Shown: positions 256-44,400 of the stretch, in pieces | How the letters are laid out: each line of letters opens with the position of its first letter | Position numbering within the stretch: the stretch's first letter is position 1 | Source: Penicillus capitatus | Taxonomy: Eukaryota > Plantae > Chlorophyta | Assembly (NCBI GenBank): GCA_965649825.1 | Contig: OZ287694.1 | Span: 1,363,197 to 1,427,196 of the forward strand | Length of the DNA: 64,000 bases | Reading direction: 5' to 3' | Made by a program: the position numbers and the translations under genes | The notes under the pieces: model-generated | The model's input: the letters and a program-made list of their open reading frames with translations, nothing else | The model's database searches: none | What the model was told of the DNA's origin: nothing

Positions 256-1398
256 ATGCGCCGCGCATTCCGGCCGGGTTTTCTGCGTCGTGCCTGCTCG
301 ACGAAAGAACTCGTTCTCGTAGATCAAACGCCGATCGCGGCGGCCCATGTCTCGGAATCGAATGCTTGGCGCTACTTAAGGGGACTCGGATTGACGGAGA
401 ACCACTGTGCGGCACTGGAGAATCGCTTTCCTCTTCTCCGACGCGTGTCTTTTCGCCAACCTCTCAGCGCAAAGATCGCCTTTCTTTCCGATAAGGGCAT
501 GAATCGACGCGGCATGCGGCGTTTCTTCGCCAACGTGCTACAGATCTACCCTGAATTTCTCGATCTCGATGTCGAAACCGACATGCAACCCGTCTTCTCT
601 TATCTCTCCACTCTGGGCCTCACAGATGAAGAAATCCTTGTCATGACGATCCAGTACCCGCATCTCATGGGCTACGGTGTCGAAGAGGTCTTCCGTAAGA
701 AGGTCGATTTTCTCAGGGAGACGCTCGTCGATGATCCACAAGACATTGCCCAGATGATCTTCTCCTTTCCACAGTACTTTGGCGTCAGTCTCGAGAACAA
801 TATCTGTCCCGTCGTGACGTACTTCATGGAAGAGATCGATCTGGATAAGGCGGCTTTGCGAAAGGTGTTTTCGAAATGCCCTCAGATCTTTGGCCTGCGT
901 CTCGATGCGACGCGTGCGAAACTGGATTTTCTGATCGAAATGGGTTTCGATCTGTTTACCATTCGGGCGCTGATCAAACGCTTTCCCGCTTTCCTCAGAG
1001 CATCGTTGAGGCATCATATCCATCCGACGCTCTGCATTCTGCTCGAATACGGAACGCGGTACATCGTCCGGAAAATTTTCTACAAGTGCCCGCAATGTCT
1101 CTGCCTGTCCTATGACGAAGAGATTCTTCCCAAGTTTCGTTTCTTCGTCGAAATGGGATACGATAATTACGATCTCAAAGTCCTGCTGGAGCAGTTTCCT
1201 GAAGTTCTGTGCTATTCGTTGGAGGACGAGATTATGCCGACGGTTGAGAAATCGTTGGACATCGGAGTGCCCTTCGTGGAAACGCGCATTACATTCGCCC
1301 GACATCCAGAGCTTTTCCGTCAGTCCATTGCGAAAGTGACAGACGACATCGATAACGAAAAAGACAAGAGATACGAACCCAAACGGCTCACTATATGA
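256..1398 (+). CDS. mTERF family protein (organellar transcription termination factor-like)
   Basis: 380-aa ORF with tandem ~35-aa repeats typical of mTERF (YPHLMGYGVE, FPQYFGVSLENNICPVVTYF, CPQIFGLRL, FPEVLCYSLEDEIMP). The true start may lie upstream. Confidence 0.85.
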   Translation: MRRAFRPGFLRRACSTKELVLVDQTPIAAAHVSESNAWRYLRGLGLTENHCAALENRFPLLRRVSFRQPLSAKIAFLSDKGMNRRGMRRFFANVLQIYPEFLDLDVETDMQPVFSYLSTLGLTDEEILVMTIQYPHLMGYGVEEVFRKKVDFLRETLVDDPQDIAQMIFSFPQYFGVSLENNICPVVTYFMEEIDLDKAALRKVFSKCPQIFGLRLDATRAKLDFLIEMGFDLFTIRALIKRFPAFLRASLRHHIHPTLCILLEYGTRYIVRKIFYKCPQCLCLSYDEEILPKFRFFVEMGYDNYDLKVLLEQFPEVLCYSLEDEIMPTVEKSLDIGVPFVETRITFARHPELFRQSIAKVTDDIDNEKDKRYEPKRLTI

Positions 1399-35280: not shown

Positions 35281-35352
35281 TTCGGAGTGGCGCAGCGGAA
35301 GCGTGGTGGGCCCATAACCCACAAGTCCGAGGATCGAAACCTCGCTCCGAAA
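35281..35352 (+). tRNA. trnMi: Initiator tRNA-Met (CAT)
   Basis: Cloverleaf TTCGGAG-TG-GCGC-AGCGGAA-GCGT-G-GTGGG-CCCATAA-CCCAC-AAGTC-CGAGG-ATCGAAA-CCTCG-CTCCGAA-A. It has three G-C pairs in the anticodon stem and A54/A60, diagnostic of eukaryotic initiators. Confidence 0.95.
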
Positions 35353-35357
35353 CTTCA

Positions 35358-35397: not shown

Positions 35398-35912
35398 CGG
35401 GACAGTACAGCTCGATGTGTTAATCCACAAATACAGTATCCATGCCGTCCTCAATCATCCATACGGGTATCTTCATTCTTAGCCTCAGCTGTTGCACGCA
35501 GTTCCTGAATAATTTTGGCCAATCCCTGAAAACGGCGCCTTCTTTGTGAGAAGGCATCGTCCGTGTGATACTTCTGGATGAACGCCTTGTTGAATGAGAC
35601 CCAGTGAGATAGACAGCGTCTCTCTGCAGAAGCCCTTCTACATCACACAGCAGAGCAGACGTGTCGAAGCGCACTTGTCGAGTCCAGTATCGAGTAACTG
35701 CGAGATTTCGTGCAGGACTGCAGACAGACAGAAGATTTGGTTTTCAAACATGACATAAAGGCGATGACTTTCGAGGGCGTCTCGGGTGGACTGTGCAGCA
35801 GACCGATCCATCGAACGTGATGTCGTGTACGTGCGAAGGCAATGTTCGACGGCAGAATGACATTTGATGCATCGCGTCCGTTACGATCTCCGACGCACAG
35901 ACGTCAGCATCG

Positions 35913-36944
35913 ATGGCATTGAGGTCGGCCGGACGACGCGGATTCCGCTTGCTGACGTCGTGGACGGCATCGAGGCGCAGCGACGATAGCGATGTTCGTG
36001 TGTTCGCATGGAGGCACGTGCGTTCCGTTACCCCTGCCTTGTCGTTTCACCTCTCTCTTATGCGATGTGACAGGTCATTGTCTCGCCAGCCAACGAAGGA
36101 TACCTCCACGAATGTTTCAGACACTTGACTGCGTCCAAGGTCGTGATGCGGTATCGCGAGATCTGGAATGGTGTATGGAGTTGCGTTTTAGAAAGGACAA
36201 GGGCAGGAGAAGACGGCGGCTACACGAAGGAACGAACAAATCGATGCCCCAACCGTCCGCCTCGTCCATGCAGACGGACGCCATGAAGTCGCCCGCACGT
36301 CTACGGCAGTTCCATGTGCTGATCGACACGTGTGTAGGTCATCCCTATGGCAGCAGCATTGGCACAGGCAAGAGCCGCGCACTTGGATTTGGTTGAGGTG
36401 ATGAAGGGAACGATCATCGAAGGAGTGTGCACGATCCTGGTGGTTGCAGGTTTCGCCTGGGGCTAAACCGCCCGTCGTTCGGATGATAGATTTCGAAGAG
36501 GTGAAGCAGAAGAGCCGTGCCAAAGAGCGCGATCAGATAAAGAAAAACAGAGAACGGCAGAAAACCGATCGCGTTCGGGAGATTCGTCTGACGCACGTCA
36601 CATCACTCTTTCCCTTCTTTGTGCGATTTTTGTCTGCATAGTCCTCGCATCGGTCCGCACGATCTGGAGATGAAGATCAAAAAGATCACAGAGTTTTTGG
36701 AGAAGCGACAGAAGGTCATGGTCGTGGTCATGACCCCATCGATGGCGGACAAGCAGATGGGACAGGAGGCACTTCAGTATATACGCTCCTTGCTGGCAGA
36801 CAAAGCCAAAGTCCGTGATCCCTTTAGTTCGCCCGCTTCGATTTAACCGTCGCTCTCGTGCAGCTCTGCGACGAGTCGAAGATCCGTCGGCACGGGACGG
36901 TGTCGATGATGCTGTTGCCGCTGTCCGAGAATAAAGAAGATTAA
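35913..36944 (+). CDS. infC: Organellar translation initiation factor IF3
   Basis: Spliced [20 protein letters not shown]...[13 protein letters not shown]...VREIRLT|[21 protein letters not shown], with an N-terminal targeting-like peptide. Confidence 0.85.
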
Positions 36945-38113
36945 AAATCGCGATCGGTGTTCGACGCTTCTTTCAATAGCCGCTCCGCAACGGAGAGGTC
37001 ATCGGGCGTCGTGAGCTTGATGTTGGTATAAGAGCCTTCCGTGATTTTGACGGGCATTCCCAATGCCTCGATGATCGACACATCATCTGTCACTTCAAGA
37101 TTCTTCTCTTCCACAAACGCAAATCCTTGTTTCAGCAGCTCAGGCTTGATCACCTGAGAGACAGGCATTTTTGAGAGACATCGAGCAAGCGGGATGTGAC
37201 TTGAGGCGTCTGCACTTCCCAGAGCTTCGCCCGTTCGAGCGTCCGATGGACGAAGAGCGATGCGTCGACTTCTTTGATGGTGGGTTTGACCTTGACGCCC
37301 AAAACGGCGGCGCCTGTTTCTAAACCGTCCACGAGACAGCGGGAGACATCGTTGGAGAGAATCAAAGGACGTGCCGAATCGTGAATCGACACCAAGAGAG
37401 CGTCATTGCTGATCTGCTGGAAGCCATTGAACACACTGTCTTGTCGTTCTTTCCCAGGCATCGCCCACTTGAGCGGAACAGAAAGAGCCAACTGCGCCAC
37501 GCTCTCCTCAAACACATACCTGCACCCATCCTCACTCTAAAAGAGTGACCTCCGATCATTACTCACCTCCATGATGGATCGCAGACGATCACGATCTCAA
37601 GCGTCTCGCGCATTTTCGCAAAGGTCTCGAGACTGTACGTTGCGATGGCTCGGCCATTCAATTCGATGAACTGTTTGGGAATCGATGCCTACGATACAGA
37701 CCGCTCGATTGGCATAGGGCAGCTGAGTGTATGTGCGTGTGACCCCCATGCGTTTTCCGACACCGCCTGCTAACAGAACGACGCTCACACTTCTATCTGG
37801 AACATCACTCTTGACCTCATACATCGAGATGGGACTCATGATGCTGAAGAGGCAGAGGGGAGCTACCATAGCCGATTCTGTCGCGAATGTGATGATGTGA
37901 CGTCTCCCATGAGCACCTTCCCCTGTTCACCACACGTGTGATTCTATGATCCGAAACAGACGATCGATCACCCGCCAATCTCCGACACACAGACGTCCAC
38001 GTCGCCGATCTTCGTTGCGTCGCGCAGGTGGCGGCGCTCTGTCGATGGGTCGAGGTCAAGGTGCCGAAGATGCGTCCTGTCGAGCATCGAAATCGCGCGG
38101 CACAGGAGATCAT
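36941..38113 (-). CDS. ispD: 2-C-methyl-D-erythritol 4-phosphate cytidylyltransferase
   Basis: [13 protein letters not shown]|[25 protein letters not shown]|[13 protein letters not shown] and [10 protein letters not shown]. Start codon approximate. Confidence 0.93.
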
Positions 38114-38165
38114 GGAGTTAATGACACGCATCTGTCGCGTGGCCCCTGTCCTGTGTGTATTGGCC

Positions 38166-39152
38166 ATGCGTCTCTTCTTCGCCACGCGTCGTGCGACGTC
38201 GTTTCTGCTGTTGCTGCAGAGAGGGATCTCCGGTATTTCGGGACACCGCAATCCGCCGTTTATTAACCCAGAAACGGGCATTAACTATGGCCGCATGCTC
38301 GATAACACCCCTATGCAGCTGCAGGCGCCACTGAAAGAGATCGCTGACGTCTTTCGGCTCAAAGGCATCATCGCCCCCTTAGGCAACAGACCACATCCCG
38401 TTCGCTTCCTCGTCAATTGCCCCGACGAAGAGATCGTCAAATGGTACTCTTCACTCATCCACGGCATGCTCAATTACTACAGGTCGCACGCCAAACGTCA
38501 CATCAAAAGAGTGAGATGATGTGACGTCTCTAGGCCGTGTGACAATTTCATCAACATCAAACGCCTCTGCGAGTATCAGATCCGTTGGTCCGGCATTATG
38601 ACCATGGCGCACAAACACAAGAGCTCCAGCGCCAAAGTCATTCGTCAGTACACTCGAGATCTGATCGTCATGGATCGAGAGGGAAAAACGATCGTGGCCC
38701 GTTTGCCCGACAAATTCTACATTGGCTCACTGGGACGTCAGTTTCTCCCAGGAGTCGAGAAGGACCGAGTGGCGCGCGTTTTGCGAGGCGCTTCGCTCAT
38801 TGCCGACGGTAAACGGATCATCCGGCGATGCGCCGTCTTCGGCTGCACCAATCTCGATGTCGAATCCGATTTCGCCCAACACATCCCGCATTTCAAGCGA
38901 AATCTACTGGAGTCGACAAAGATCGGCAGTCTGGTCGCCATGCGCAATGCGATCATGCGACGGCCAATTCGTCTATGTGTGGAACACTGGAGCGAATTGC
39001 ACAAGGGTCGCGTGCGGCTTGAGCATTTGGATTATACAATGGTTATGGGCCGCCGACGCAATACCTTCTACAAAGATCCTCTGGAGACACAACGCGAGTA
39101 CAACTGGGCGCATTATCGCAGAGATCCCTTCTTGGAAACCCTTCCCAAATAA
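38166..39152 (+). CDS. Nuclear-encoded group II intron maturase-like protein (domain X plus degenerate HNH/Zn domain, no RT)
   Basis: One 51-nt intron (38483-38533) joins EEIVKWYSSLIHGMLNYYR|PCDNF...YQIRWSGIMTMAHKHKSSSAKVIRQY (domain X consensus GxxNYY...TLAxKxKxS..K+I.+Y). C-terminal CAVFGC...RRPIRLCVEHWSELHKG. N-terminus MRLFFATRRATS looks like a targeting peptide. Confidence 0.85.
38495..38527. repeat. Perfect 11-bp inverted repeat inside the maturase-gene intron
   Basis: ACGTCACATCA-aaagagtgaga-TGATGTGACGT. Confidence 0.9.
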
Positions 39153-39313
39153 CAGCCCCGTTCGACCGATGCCCTTATCGAAAGTAATAGATGATGCCTG
39201 TCGTGCTAACAAACACGAGCATCGGCAAAAAGATAGCAGCAAAGGTGGATGCGGTCACGGAAGGCACGGATCTCTCCAGTCCCTCTTCCTCATACACATC
39301 CGATGCCTTGTTT

Positions 39314-41369
39314 TTACTGTGAACAGAACAGAACACGGTTTTGGCGGCGGCTATTGTGATAGACGGACTTTGTATTGTGCTCGTCTTCGGTCGTGGACGC
39401 GAGTTGTATATAACGTGGCAGATTCGATGGCGGCGCCGCCGCTGTCAGCAACCGCCAGGAAATGACGCGGCCTTCTGTTTGATCGGCCGAAGGCGCTGGA
39501 TAGTAGAGACTCGCTACGATGACCAACCCAACAGTCAATGCAAACAGTATTGGACTGACGTAGTGAAAGTTCAGACAGAAGAAGCAGTTTGCCCAAGTCA
39601 ACGTCTACAGCATCGATGTCCAGCAGACGACGGCAGAGAGGACAGACCTGACGGTTATCAGGATGCACTTGCTGATCGCACGTGTCTTGAAAGACGAGGA
39701 AAAAGATGAGGCGAATGGCTCCGACGAGGGATCCGATGGATAGCCCGATGACGGCGCCTTCGCTGTTGACTCTTCTCAGGAAGATGCCACAGGCAAAGAC
39801 GGCAGTGATGGATGGCCCGAGATGGTTGATGATTTCGGAAGCCACGATGAACAGACTGCGATTGGAGGCGTCGATGACAGGGATCCACAGAAGGGTCAGC
39901 ACAACGAGACCCACGACGGCGATCCGGCCAACTCTTGTCACTTCTCTTGCGCTCAGTGCCTCTCCACACATCACAGCTGATGAGATTGGAGGAGATAGTG
40001 TGATAAGTGTGACTGACCCGTATGGCAGAGACACCGACCGTAAATGTCGTAGGTAAACATCGCCGATACAGAATTGAAGAGAGAGGAGAGAGACGACATC
40101 ATCGCCGCCAGAAACGACGCGATCATGAGTCCCTTGACACCATGAGGAAACTCATGCAGAACCAGCAGAGGGTAGGCTTTGTTCGCTTCGTGCGATGCAT
40201 CCAGCGACGTTGAGCACCAGGCAGGAAAGGATGCACCCGACGGATCTGCTCGACACCATTCGAACAGCAGACGCGCCACCATTCCCGGGAAAACTAGAAA
40301 GTGGATGCTGCGTGGAAGGGAGGTAGCCCAGTCGGTGTACCGATAATAAAGAGGGGCAGCAGTTTGAGCAATGCCGCTCCGGCGGTGCCCAGTCGTGCGT
40401 GGTGGAGATTCTTGGCACTCAGCACACGCTGCGCCATTTCTTGATCCAGACACCAGCACCGCATTCCGCCGATGAACAGGGCCAGCCAAGTGCCGAGCCA
40501 TGGGAAGTCTCGGTCGTCAAGAGGACGGATCAAATGCGGAAAGGACTCTAACTGAACGGCTTCCAGTTTCTCAAAGAGGCCACCGATACCGCCGACGAGA
40601 CGCAGAGAGATGAGACTGCCGACGGCGCCGCCAGTTAACAGGATGACGCTCTGAATGGCATCGGTGATCATCACTGCCTGCCAGAGGGTGTCCAGCAAAG
40701 GGCAGTGTGTGAGAGGTCACACTTTTAAGCCGCCGATGATTGTGTAAAGCGCCGTGAGGCAGACGATGAGTGGCGTCGATTGCCAGATAGTGAGTCCGGT
40801 GACCACTTCCAGCACGACCGATCCGGCATAGAGGGTCGCCGAGATGGTGGCCAAGATATGCGTCGCGATCAGAATAGCCACAAACACAAATCTGCAGAAG
40901 CATAGGACGAGGAAAGAACTTCGCAATCGTCGTGCTGCTGTACCTGCAGATTCTATTGAAACGCAGTTCCAAGTACTCGGGCGTGGTCCGAATATTGCAG
41001 TGGATATAGAGCGGGGCAAAGACCCAGCCCAGCAGGATGAGAAGATAGGGCGCCGAGAGTTCATACATCGCAACAGCGATGCCAGATTTCGCAGCCGTCC
41101 CTGCCATACCAACAAACTGTTCACTTCCTACAAAGCGCATCCCCTTATGCCTGCCCTTGTCTAGGGGGTATGTTCGCGAACGTACCAACATTTGCGGCGA
41201 AAAGTGAGGCCGCGACGATGTAGTATGGCATGCAACGCCCAGCAAGGAAATAATCATGTGTCGTCGACGACCGGCGCTCCTGTTTTCCTAGAGAGTAGTA
41301 GATACCGCAAGCGACGACCACGGCAACGGACGCTGCGACAATAACAGTGTCGATAAGATGCAACGCCAT
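39314..41369 (-). CDS. Sodium:solute symporter (SLC5/SSS family)
   Basis: DYFLAGR...ASLFAANVG|SEQFVGMAG, WCLDQEMAQRVLSAKN and AAMMSSLSSLFNS. Many short introns; C-terminal exon uncertain. Confidence 0.9.
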
Positions 41370-41437
41370 CGGTTCCGTTTTGCCTCACTCGATAGAATAA
41401 CCAACCACCCGGGCGACGCGCCGGATGATGTGACAGG

Positions 41438-44400
41438 TTACGTCAAACTGTCAACAAGCTCCTGTGCCCGATGGACGATCGAAGGCGATAGGCCTTGATC
41501 GAGAGCAACCTCCAGACCGAAGCTCTCTTCGCAGAAACCGGGAAGCAGCTTCCAAGTGGTCGTCTTGCCTCCGTTGGCGCTTCGTCCGACTTCCATACGG
41601 TAGAAGACGGCCTCCGGGAAATCTTCGGTGAAGTTGGCGATCTTGTGCAGATGTGTGGCGAAGACGCCGAAGCAATGACGATCGTAGAGTTCTTTGAAGA
41701 TCGACGCCGAGATGGCTGTCCCTCCTGTCACTTCCGTTCCTTTGCCCAACTCGTCGATGAGCACCAAAGTACGCGACGTCGCATCGTGCAGGACGTGGGA
41801 CATTTCGGTCATCTCTACGGCAAAGGCGCTGAGATTTTCGAGCGGGCTATCCGTCACCAGGGTCTTGAGATTGACGCAGTCCATGAAAGGCAGAGCAGCC
41901 GCGCTGGCCGGAACGTAGAATCCGCATACGCCCAGGCAGCAGACGGCGGCGATCGATCGCAGAACAGTCGACTTTCCTAAGAGGCACACCATCGGAGAGG
42001 AGGCAATGCGCAGGAGGAAGAGTGTACCTGCCATGTTGGGTCCCGTCAGAATTGCCATACGTTTTAGCGAGAGGCTATTCAGCGTGCTCTCTTCTCGACG
42101 CATCCAGTAGGGCCAGAAATCGATGATCTCGAGAGGACCTGGCGATCTGGTCGTCAAGCGTGAGATATCTGGCAGACACCAATGACGTGACTGCGCTTCG
42201 GTGACGTGACTGGCCAAGGCAGTGAGAATAATAGAAGAGTGAGAAGCAGCAACGAGCGTCGAGAGATTCTGCACCAGATAGACGACGAGCTGCTGCATGT
42301 GCCGCTGAAAGGCTTCTTCCCAAGCCACCCACACCGCACTGGAATAAAATCAGGAGCGAGGCACGTGGATAGACGACGTCTTACCGGTAGCGATGGATGA
42401 GAGGCGTCAGCGATTCGATTTCGTACAGATCTTTGCCAAAACGCGTTTTCGTTCCAAGGCCGTCGGAATGGTGTCGGGAAACGGCGCCGCCATTTTCGGG
42501 GAGTTGCAGAGCGATGGACATGTTCTTGATGTCGAAGTAGATGCCATCGTATGCGCCGGCTGGATCAGATGGCTCGGTTGCATCGTCGGCCACACGGGGC
42601 ACATATCTCCGGTACTCCTCCACAAAGCTGCGCTTTGCCTGTCGAATATCGTCCATCTCGTCCAAGAGAAGCTCGCAATGGACGCAGTCGTGATAGAACG
42701 ACGCCATGGACTCCAGGAACCTCTCATAAGCGTCGTCTTCTTTGCCACGCTTCGAGAAGAAGTTGCCCGTTGTGCATTGGGCTGTTGACCGATCGTCCGC
42801 CGCATAGAGATCGTCTCTCAAAACCTGCACGTGACATCGCGTTCGCATACGATCTGTTGACCGACATCCGACTGCACCTGCGAGATCGCCTTGACGATTT
42901 TCGTGCTCTTCTGCCGGAACGATATCTGCTCCACTTCAAAATGCACTTCCTTGCCCACGATGCCCAAGAGAGGCGAGATGATACGGACCGAAGCTGGATC
43001 TTCCAACAGCGCGATGATGCCGTTCAACATTTTTCGCAGCTCGTCCAGAAACTCAACACTCCATTTCCCATGCCTCAGTATCTGGCACCGCATGTCGTGC
43101 GATGCCGTCCATCGAATGCGATAGACGTACTTCCACGATTCTGTTGGGCGCCAGTCGGGCATTGAGTTGAGGGATAGAACAGGCCGTCTGCGTCAGTTCC
43201 TGACAGAGCTGATGGATTCGCCTTGCCGTTTCGGGCGACGGTGGATCCAAAATACATCGCCGCATCCAACTCATCACAAGCTTCTGGCATCGCTCTGGGA
43301 GGACGACCTCCATGAGAGGCAAGACGCCACTGTGCTCTCTGGGACAGATACCGAGTTCGCTAACCGTCGACAACGGCGGCGGCGATGTGCGTTCTTTGAC
43401 ATCGTCCGTCAAGACAACGCACCGATCGATATCGATCTGCAGATTTTTCTGCAGCATCAGTTGCCGGAAACCCGCTATGGGATCCTCTGCCTGATAGCGA
43501 TCGACCGATCCGAACACAGACTTGGCGATATCTTCTGCCCTTTTCTGCCATCCTCTGAAATCCGCATCGATTCTTGCCCCGGGCAGCGACGAGATGTGCA
43601 CGTAAAGGGGCGGCGTCATGCCAGTCGAGTTGAGCTTTGCCCAGAGTCCTTCTTCACTCAAACGCGACGTGATCCGCATGGCGTTCTCTTTCACATCGTA
43701 CTGAAGGAGTGAGAAGCCTGTCTGCGACCACCAAACCGCCGCCAGTGGATTCGATCTATCCTGCGCTTCGTCTATCTGAGCGAGATCCCCGTCTTTCAAG
43801 GCGTAGACGTAACTGGACGTTTGGGTTCCGTCGATGATCGCCGCGACATAGTGCCGTCGGTAGTTTCGGTTTTTTCCGATTCTGTTCAGTTGATCGGATT
43901 CTTCGCAGATGACGACTTCGAATCCACATTGCTGGACGATTCTGTGGAGATAGTATGGCAAGTTTTCTGGCGAGCAGCGCACACGGGCGACGCCGTCGGC
44001 GCCCACAGGAGACATGTCACCAAACTTCATCAGCATGACGGCATCGATACCCACCGCCACATAATACTCGCCCGAACGTACCAACACAATGCGTTCCGGA
44101 TTCTGAAGCTTCGTCTCTCGAAAGAAAGAAAAATACGTCACCTGGATCGCACTCCTAAGTCCATGGCGTCTTTCGACTTCTTCATACCTTCTTCTGGGCG
44201 GCGCTGTCCAGCCAGAGCGGTTTTGAAGAATCTAGGCTCTTGAGGTAGGGCAGTGTTGACGGATCTTCGATTTCTTCGACCACTTCGTGCCACGTCTTGC
44301 GTCGCAGGATCTCGGGATCCTTCGCAACGAACCATTTCCCGTTCCACATCCGCTGCATTCCGAACACATAACGACCGAAACGGCGCGTTTGGCCGAACGG

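Follow-up and report, generated by a model that had tools for sequence, protein, structure and literature searches.

A spliced nuclear gene for a maturase-type protein without a reverse transcriptase domain in the green alga Penicillus capitatus

How far can a group II intron-encoded protein be reduced after its gene has reached the nucleus, and could the remaining part still assist splicing? This question is raised by a small gene located on a 64-kb stretch of DNA from Penicillus capitatus (64,000 nucleotides, hereafter the window), whose product combines the maturase domain X with the remains of a zinc/HNH module and lacks a reverse transcriptase (RT) domain. An earlier note, made from the letters alone, had proposed a domesticated splicing factor for organellar introns. 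Here, we examine the gene model and its surroundings, the domains of the protein, its relatives, and the functions that could be attributed to it.

A free-standing nuclear gene

Two open-frame segments lie in the same frame on the forward strand between 38166 and 39152, and are joined by excising 38483-38533. The intron must be removed because it contains an in-frame TGA. The spliced CDS of 936 nt (311 codons) encodes a 311-aa protein, close to the ~310 aa first estimated. The gene and its upstream neighbor are arranged as follows:

36941-38108, reverse strand: ispD, divergently transcribed, its exons spanning ~37869-36941, with a putative transit-peptide exon extending as far as 38108
38166-38482, forward strand: exon 1, codons 1-105 and 2 nt of codon 106, encoding the conserved ISGISG..PPFINPETGINYG motif between a presequence-like N-terminus and the first half of domain X
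38483-38533, forward strand: spliceosomal intron of 51 nt, GT..AG, phase 2
38534-39152, forward strand: exon 2, from the third nt of codon 106 to the stop codon, encoding what remains of domain X, followed by the D region, the Zn/HNH domain in its degenerate state, and the family-specific C-terminal tail

At the protein level, the splice junction reads …MLNYYR/PCDNFINIKRL… and falls in the core of the group II maturase domain X. The intron itself contains an 11-bp hairpin (MFE -15.1 kcal/mol, z -2.3) and the motif GATGTGACGTC, which is enriched among the introns of the window. Alternative starts are possible at in-frame ATGs located upstream, at 38070, 38112, and 38121. The occurrence of GATGTGACGTC at 37894 had suggested that the maturase might have a further coding exon upstream; this was rejected, as frame 0 has a stop between 37914 and 38166 and the window contains no RT sequence. 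Regarding ispD, a candidate model of its first exon, with a 73-nt intron and an upstream exon ending in …VVNRG, is predicted to restore the frame; with a first intron of 39 or 54 nt, the frame runs into a stop. The distance of ~50 bp to ispD given by the earlier note would hold under this candidate model.

The absence of RT sequence was consistent across the searches. Pfam RVT_1 does not match the 311-aa protein, and when eight RT-bearing intron proteins were compared to the window by tblastn, only their last ~240 residues (X-D-En) aligned, at 38301-39062 (E-values from 7e-32 to 8e-18), with no RT-domain match in the whole 64 kb, even at E<=10. The same type of search was negative for RT sequence at the syntenic locus L008 (20 kb) and at the other orthologous loci described below. 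At the Rfam gathering threshold, the sole match in the window was a tRNA, and no group II intron RNA was detected; there was none either over 35500-41500 at E<=1 or in the orthologous loci L001, L002, and L008; the Intron_gpII model scored 52.6 and 48.2 bits in two positive controls, L006 and L007, respectively. In addition, ispD occupies the upstream side on the reverse strand, leaving no space for an upstream RT exon. Therefore, given the lack of RT and of group II RNA and the position of ispD directly upstream on the other strand, the gene is free-standing and RT-less, and the statements of the earlier note that it has no RT domain or YADD motif and no flanking group II RNA hold in these searches.

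The gene is also nuclear-encoded, as the note had claimed. It carries a spliceosomal intron, whose position is shared with other genomes, and it is surrounded by ordinary nuclear genes (mTERF, PUB/UBX, INO80, a kinase, PABP, DnaJ, ispD, MutS, and a carotenoid oxygenase), part of whose order is found again in L008. Its GC3 of 0.65 falls in the range of these neighbors (0.59-0.66), in a window with a GC content of ~52%, close to the 52.4% of Ostreobium quekettii and higher than in Bryopsis (45.9%) or Caulerpa (40.4%) (bioRxiv 10.1101/2020.07.21.211367; 10.1101/2023.11.22.568388).

Domains of the protein and their degeneration

The protein can be divided into five regions:

38166-38225, forward strand: residues 1-20 (MRLFFATRRATSFLLLLQRG), variable basic N-terminus with 4 Arg and no acidic residues, putative organelle-targeting presequence
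38313-38657, forward strand: residues 50-147, domain X or thumb, split by the intron (Pfam PF01348, LtrA thumb match, AF2, Foldseek)
38658-38813, forward strand: residues 148-199, D (DNA-binding-type) region, including ARLPDKFYIGSLGRQFLPG (alignment with RT-bearing intron proteins)
38814-39041, forward strand: residues 200-275, zinc-knuckle/HNH-derived domain (MAFFT alignment with relatives)
39042-39149, forward strand: residues 276-311, family-specific C-terminal extension (alignment)

The N-terminus looks targeting-like by its composition alone. In the orthologous loci whose 5' end is present, the protein starts ~20 codons ahead of the conserved ISGISGxRxPPFxNPxTGxxYG motif, and the 18-24 residues preceding ISGISG form basic, non-conserved stretches with 3-5 Lys/Arg and 0-1 acidic residues. 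The constraint on the first ~30 codons is much weaker than on the rest of the CDS, with a pN/pS of ~0.45-0.5 in the N-terminus against ~0.17-0.2 elsewhere in the protein.

The clear domain X announced by the earlier note was recovered by an HMM search, in which Pfam Intron_maturas2 (PF01348) matches residues 50-147 with 50.8 bits (gathering score 20.8; E=2.2e-13). The GIIM model gives a weak, sub-threshold match, and the NCBIfam search of the 311-aa protein gave none. In a phmmer search against the PDB, the only match was the LtrA thumb, aligned to residues 78-145. Structure prediction with AlphaFold, using an alignment of 25 sequences that includes RT-bearing relatives, reached a mean pLDDT of 67.7, with values of 76-95 over residues 50-175; a first run with 17 sequences had given a pLDDT of 49.8, too poor for use. 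When the AF2 model was compared to the PDB with Foldseek, LtrA in its intron complex (8h2h_D) was the sole significant fold match (E=2e-4 over 248 columns), at 21% identity and with a poor global superposition (TM 0.31). The D region following domain X aligns with that of RT-bearing intron proteins and with the organellar-type ORFs L006 and L011, and is invariant across the orthologues.

The zinc-knuckle/HNH-derived domain was assessed in a MAFFT alignment with P0005 and P0007-P0015, among which P0007, P0009, P0010, P0012, P0014, and P0015 bear an RT. The zinc-ligand pairs C205-x4-C210 and C254-x2-H257 are kept, matching the CxxxxC…CxxH of the relatives, and are invariant in all orthologues, so that metal binding is predicted. 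The catalytic positions have been replaced, as the earlier note had read from the VESDF string: the V/I-E-x-H-H of the relatives is VESDF in this protein, with D218-F219 in place of HH, the HNH Asn of NRKQIPLC is Met247, and CxxHH has become CVEHW, where W258 substitutes for the second His while H257 and H262 are kept. A loop of this domain is also ~8 aa shorter than in the relatives. The same degenerate state is found in all orthologues, and the pN/pS over this domain is ~0.16-0.25. The HNH module is, judging from this alignment, catalytically dead. The Pfam HNH models do not match the protein at E<=10, and they also miss the intact relatives. Finally, the family shares a conserved C-terminal extension of 36 residues (…QREYNWxHY..DP.L..LPK), which the intron-encoded relatives lack.

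Orthologues, selection, and probable organellar origin

Caulerpa lentillifera has an orthologue, and at least five further Bryopsidales-like assemblies, from metagenomes or the SRA, contain one as well; their GC contents range from 25% to 52%. The assignment of the family to the order Bryopsidales, which comprises siphonous green algae, was inferred from the only named orthologue, EP00210 g9242.t1 of Caulerpa lentillifera (79% identity). Introns of roughly 50 nt had also brought red algae, diatoms, apicomplexans, and Galdieria-like organisms into consideration, but the Caulerpa orthologue and published GC values argue against them. The main orthologous loci are:

L001: GC 25%
L002: GC 52%
L003/L004: GC 41-44%, from a Botany Bay macroalgal-surface metagenome
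L008: GC 45%, on a 50-kb contig
P0050: exon-1 ORF only

Exon 1 ends identically (…YYR) in L001, L002, L003/L004, L008, P0050, and P0051. The acquisition of a spliceosomal intron proposed by the earlier note is thus borne out: its position (phase 2, after YYR) recurs at five other loci, where introns of 74, 50, 48, and 44 nt are unrelated in sequence, and the annotated Caulerpa protein continues uninterrupted over the junction. In the ENA metagenome assembly ERZ25074695, the same gene was called as two prokaryote-style ORFs. The synteny is also conserved, as L008 presents the order PABP-DnaJ(-)-ispD(-)-gene(+)-SSF symporter(-)…RPE65 seen in the window, including Pfam matches to IspD, and the downstream symporter is present at L002 and L003 as well.

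In six taxa, the reading frame is uninterrupted, in agreement with the gene not being frameshifted. Nei-Gojobori comparisons gave a pS of 0.71-1.02, which is saturated, against a pN of 0.12-0.24 and a dN of 0.13-0.29, and for the pair in which dS could still be computed, the window and L002, dN/dS was 0.07. These values, with saturated synonymous sites and low dN, indicate strong purifying selection on the gene, with domain X and the C-terminal half under equal constraint.

Regarding the origin of the family, we scanned 1.84 billion representative proteins exhaustively with an HMM covering the C-terminal 184 columns only, since the first alignment was gappy at its N-terminus. With this C-terminal profile, 12 proteins were retrieved at E<=1e-3, corresponding to one cluster of this gene family and eleven others; by this search, the gene is not shared across chlorophytes at large, contrary to a possibility raised by the earlier note. 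Among the eleven, the long matches are RT+X proteins: an ORF from an organelle of Coleochaete scutata (YP_009710072), ORFs joined to exons of ATP-synthase alpha, and, from a TARA sample, a cox1-intron ORF located on a mitochondrial contig of 153 kb; the matches examined are organellar-type or metagenomic ORFs. A second, word-indexed profile search, which offset the missing coverage of domain X only in part, added land-plant MatR fragments with 40-44% identity in domain X.

In a neighbor-joining tree (175 columns, 200 bootstraps, nMATs absent), the nuclear proteins form a clade with 100% support, to which the L006 ORF is sister (91%), MatR branching next with weak support (63%). The L006 ORF is followed, 190 nt downstream, by a bona fide group II domain V/VI (the Intron_gpII match used as a positive control above, E=4e-8). 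A second ORF, L011, 76% identical to L006, has RT blocks upstream, with YADH for YADD and several in-frame stops. Both L006 and L011 are degenerate (YADH, in-frame stops, no En domain). For L006, we considered a mitochondrial code with TGA as Trp, and discarded it given that L011 has TGG at that Trp and other in-frame stops, making a degenerate ORF the simpler reading. The nearest relatives of the nuclear clade are therefore intron-borne, degenerating organellar ORFs with a GC content of ~50-55%; Bryopsidales mitochondria have been described as markedly more GC-rich than the plastids (PMC6944098). Because of these relatives, an organelle-to-nucleus transfer in the Bryopsidales stem, apart from the land-plant nMATs, appears supported, and the independence from nMATs suggested by the earlier note is favored by the 91% sister position of L006 in this tree built without them. 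The gene is best explained as a descendant of the 3' portion of a group II intron-encoded protein of mitochondrial type, with neither RT fingers nor palm left.

Proposed splicing role, alternatives, and known systems

We consider it probable that the protein is a nuclear, RT-less maturase acting in trans on organellar group II introns and derived from a mitochondrial-type intron protein. The short basic N-terminus would direct import into an organelle, most likely the mitochondrion. This target is favored because the relatives are mitochondrial and because many group II introns of Bryopsidales mitochondria lack ORFs, as exemplified by the mtDNA of Ostreobium quekettii, where 28 group II introns are accompanied by just four ORFs that contain an RVT domain (PMC6944098); in Bryopsis, introns make up 54% of the mtDNA (bioRxiv 10.1101/2023.11.22.568388). 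The presequence is short and would be equally compatible with the mitochondrion or the plastid, which counts against the splicing proposal. Inside the organelle, the thumb together with the D/Zn module would bind the folded core of ORF-less group II introns and stabilize their active structure, so that the protein could act in trans as a general maturase, analogous to nMATs and MatK, without an RT remnant, while the dead HNH/Zn domain might provide an additional nucleic-acid or protein contact, with no nuclease activity. The mitochondria of Bryopsidales rank with the most intron-inflated of green algae, and an ORF is missing from the majority of their group II introns; this gene is thus an obvious candidate for the trans-acting factor that such introns would need.

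The stronger form of this proposal, in which the thumb, D, and dead HNH zinc module alone suffice as a general nuclear maturase for the many mitochondrial group II introns of siphonous green algae that lack ORFs, is put forward with reserve, as conceivable rather than probable. Domestication would then have happened a second time, independently of the nMATs and more radically. In the intron proteins studied, the RT contributes to binding of the intron RNA together with domain X (PMC4424553), and therefore a maturase with a thumb only is unprecedented and might be insufficient alone.

The main rival to the splicing reading is another nucleic-acid-binding role exerted through the D/zinc-knuckle region, such as organellar DNA or RNA binding in recombination/repair, genome maintenance, control of intron mobility, or RNA stabilization, with domain X as a scaffold. 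We regard it as rather unlikely, yet worth keeping in mind. The D/Zn half is constrained as strongly as domain X, which would also suit a DNA-directed role and counts against the splicing reading, and the family has gained a conserved C-terminal extension of its own. Bryopsidales mitochondrial genomes are unusually inflated, with recombination-related factors being discussed (PMC6944098), and Caulerpa retains the gene despite a predominance of group I introns in its mtDNA (PMC6944098), which again speaks against splicing. On the other side, domain X is tied to maturase function, having been kept by MatK while RT motifs were lost (PMC4424553). Moreover, the catalytic HNH residues of the Penicillus protein are gone. 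A degenerate En domain is also retained by the type II nMATs (nMAT3/4), which still act in splicing.

A further option, which we find improbable, is that of a half-maturase: the protein would be a partner of organelle-encoded RT-only or X-deficient ORFs, or of a nuclear factor, completing the RT and thumb pair in trans. Indeed, the Intron_maturas2 domain is missing from some mitochondrial RT ORFs of Bryopsis (bioRxiv 10.1101/2023.11.22.568388). Degeneration of the kind described above is also seen in L006 and L011, the closest relatives in organelles. Nevertheless, this scenario is purely speculative, and we know of no split RT/thumb maturase of such kind. Lastly, a decaying nuclear fragment of organellar DNA (a NUMT-like pseudogene) or an assembly error involving organellar sequence, suggested by the descent from an organellar intron ORF and by the gene calls breaking it into two ORFs in a metagenome assembly, is excluded for practical purposes by the frame intact in six taxa, the saturated dS and a dN/dS far below 1, the conserved spliceosomal intron and nuclear synteny, and the nuclear-like GC3. 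The trans-acting maturase stays as the preferred reading.

To our knowledge, the nuclear take-over of organellar maturases has so far been documented for land plants (nMAT1-4, mat-nuc1, and the Pelargonium matR transfer), always with the RT kept. The present gene shows the same take-over, probably as a separate event, in a chlorophyte order, and in a further reduced form with no RT remnant. In the literature on nuclear maturases in algae, RT-less maturases, and Bryopsidales genomes, we found no nuclear RT-less green-algal maturase described, and the word "maturase" is absent from the Ostreobium genome preprint. As for annotation, the gene is unnamed in Caulerpa and broken into two prokaryote-style ORFs in the metagenome assembly. 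If the thumb plus D/Zn alone supports splicing, the minimal maturase would be much smaller than thought, and this protein would be the smallest natural maturase known. It would then represent a natural experiment on the protein surfaces needed by a group II ribozyme, bearing on how the dependence of ribozymes on proteins evolved en route to the spliceosome. The parallel with Prp8 drawn by the earlier note was overstated and holds as an analogy only, since Prp8 keeps an RT-like fold and the protein described here has none.

The closest known counterparts are the nMATs, imported splicing factors derived from intron-encoded proteins (PMC4424553, PMC10012718). Like the Penicillus gene, nMAT1-4 and the Physcomitrium mat-nuc1 are nuclear and free-standing, derive from mitochondrial-lineage intron proteins, and have no intron RNA around them; an N-terminal presequence presumably takes both kinds of protein to organelles, and the En domain of the type II nMATs is kept in a degenerate state, as here. 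However, nMATs retain the RT domain (PMC4424553, citing Mohr & Lambowitz 2003), in agreement with the earlier note, whereas the Bryopsidales protein has no RT at all. The nMATs are found in land plants and the present gene is restricted to Bryopsidales green algae, its nearest relatives being algal organellar ORFs and MatR-type domain X rather than nMATs, which were outside our tree.

MatK offers a second likeness, as a member of the maturase lineage that has shed RT sequence (motifs 0-4), retained domain X, and is thought to serve several introns (PMC4424553). In contrast to the nuclear-encoded Penicillus protein, in which RT sequence is lacking and D is retained along with a remnant of Zn/HNH, MatK is plastid-encoded inside a group II intron (trnK), can still be aligned to RT motifs 5-7, and lacks D/En (PMC4424553). 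The mitochondrial-lineage intron proteins (Coleochaete scutata YP_009710072, the cox1/atp1 intron ORFs, and MatR) show 28-35% identity over X-D-En and the same CAVxGC…LCxxH zinc-knuckle spacing, but they include an RT domain, are encoded within domain IV of organellar group II introns, and mostly retain HH…N…H. The sole significant match among solved structures, from the thumb through the C-terminal region, is LtrA of the Lactococcus lactis Ll.LtrB intron (PDB 5g2x, 8h2h), which differs in being a complete RT-X-D-En retroelement protein. The Penicillus gene would be best viewed as a separate, RT-less counterpart to the nMATs of land plants.

Relatives of the nuclear maturase family

The closest relatives of the nuclear maturase family are two ORFs from group II introns of organellar type:

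L006 1-1026, organellar-type group II intron ORF, 50-55% GC
L011 1-3784, organellar-type group II intron ORF, 50-55% GC

Domain V/VI is present in L006 (Rfam 52.6 bits), whose ORF carries a TGA at a conserved Trp position, and L011 contains RT blocks with YADH together with several in-frame stops. The HNH-type endonuclease (En) domain is missing from both ORFs, which may descend from the organellar progenitor and now be in decay.

In addition, we found a second RT-less ORF composed of domain X, the D region and En (X-D-En), in which the catalytic His pair (HH motif) is intact:

L005 1503-2336, P0005, RT-less X-D-En ORF of 277 aa on a 3.7-kb JGI metagenome contig

No RT sequence was detected in the 1.5 kb upstream of P0005 on L005, and searches of this contig against Rfam gave no group II match. 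P0005 may represent a further free-standing derivative, from a different organism; alternatively, it may be one exon of a gene that is split.

The contig matching the window (L009; ENA ERZ25074695 ctg340529) belongs to a metagenome assembly annotated with prokaryote-style gene calls, in which the maturase is split into two ORFs of 149 aa and 160 aa. Given this split, the eukaryotic genes of the 1.84-Mb ctg340529 are effectively unannotated.

A repeated, possible intron motif

The 11-mer GATGTGACGTC occurs 15 times in the window at ≤1 mismatch (2.25 copies expected), a number reached by 0 of 100 shuffles:

16624, 17740, 18932, 37894 and 38518 (+), copies of GATGTGACGTC
12370 (+); 30013, 36594, 49875 and 55868 (-), examples of copies with 1 mismatch

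Because most of the inspected copies lie in sense orientation within short introns (~50-70 nt), 5-40 nt 5' of an apparent 3' splice site, the sequence points to an extended branch-site or intron motif particular to this alga. No copy of it was found in the related locus L008, the syntenic orthologue. The maturase intron also contains a predicted hairpin:

38494-38528 (+), 11-bp hairpin, arms ACGUCACAUCA / UGAUGUGACGU

Folding of this 51-nt intron gives an MFE of -15.1 kcal/mol (z = -2.3 relative to shuffles), and the hairpin draws both intron ends together.

The interval between ispD and the maturase

Two features concern the interval upstream of the maturase start:

37824-38108 (-), candidate 5' part of ispD
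37880-37913 (+), perfect 16-nt copy of the maturase intron 3' motif, GATGATGTGACGTCTC, between ispD and the maturase start

A conserved MYE is located ~10 residues ahead of the start of the ispD catalytic core. Farther upstream lies a Ser/Thr/Arg-rich ORF (MISCAARF…VVNRG), and removal of a candidate 73-nt intron that carries a strong pyrimidine tract would link the two in frame; under this model, the ispD and maturase start codons would lie head to head, ~57 bp apart. The GATGATGTGACGTCTC copy is preceded by a donor-like GTCGCG, and 37880-37913 (+) could correspond to a very small intron in the maturase 5' UTR, or may just be antisense sequence within the candidate 73-nt first ispD intron. Additional maturase coding sequence from this segment is ruled out, since a frame 0 stop precedes 38166.

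Other neighbouring genes

Three further features were observed in the window:

256-1398 (+), mTERF-family gene
35281-35353 (+), tRNA-Met gene
41438-44141 (-), ORFs with MutS domain I and domain V

A tRNA also occupies the syntenic position in L008. The mTERF family is another class of organellar nucleic-acid-binding factor. The MutS ORFs could represent an MSH1-type organellar mismatch-repair homologue, as discussed for Ostreobium (PMC6944098).
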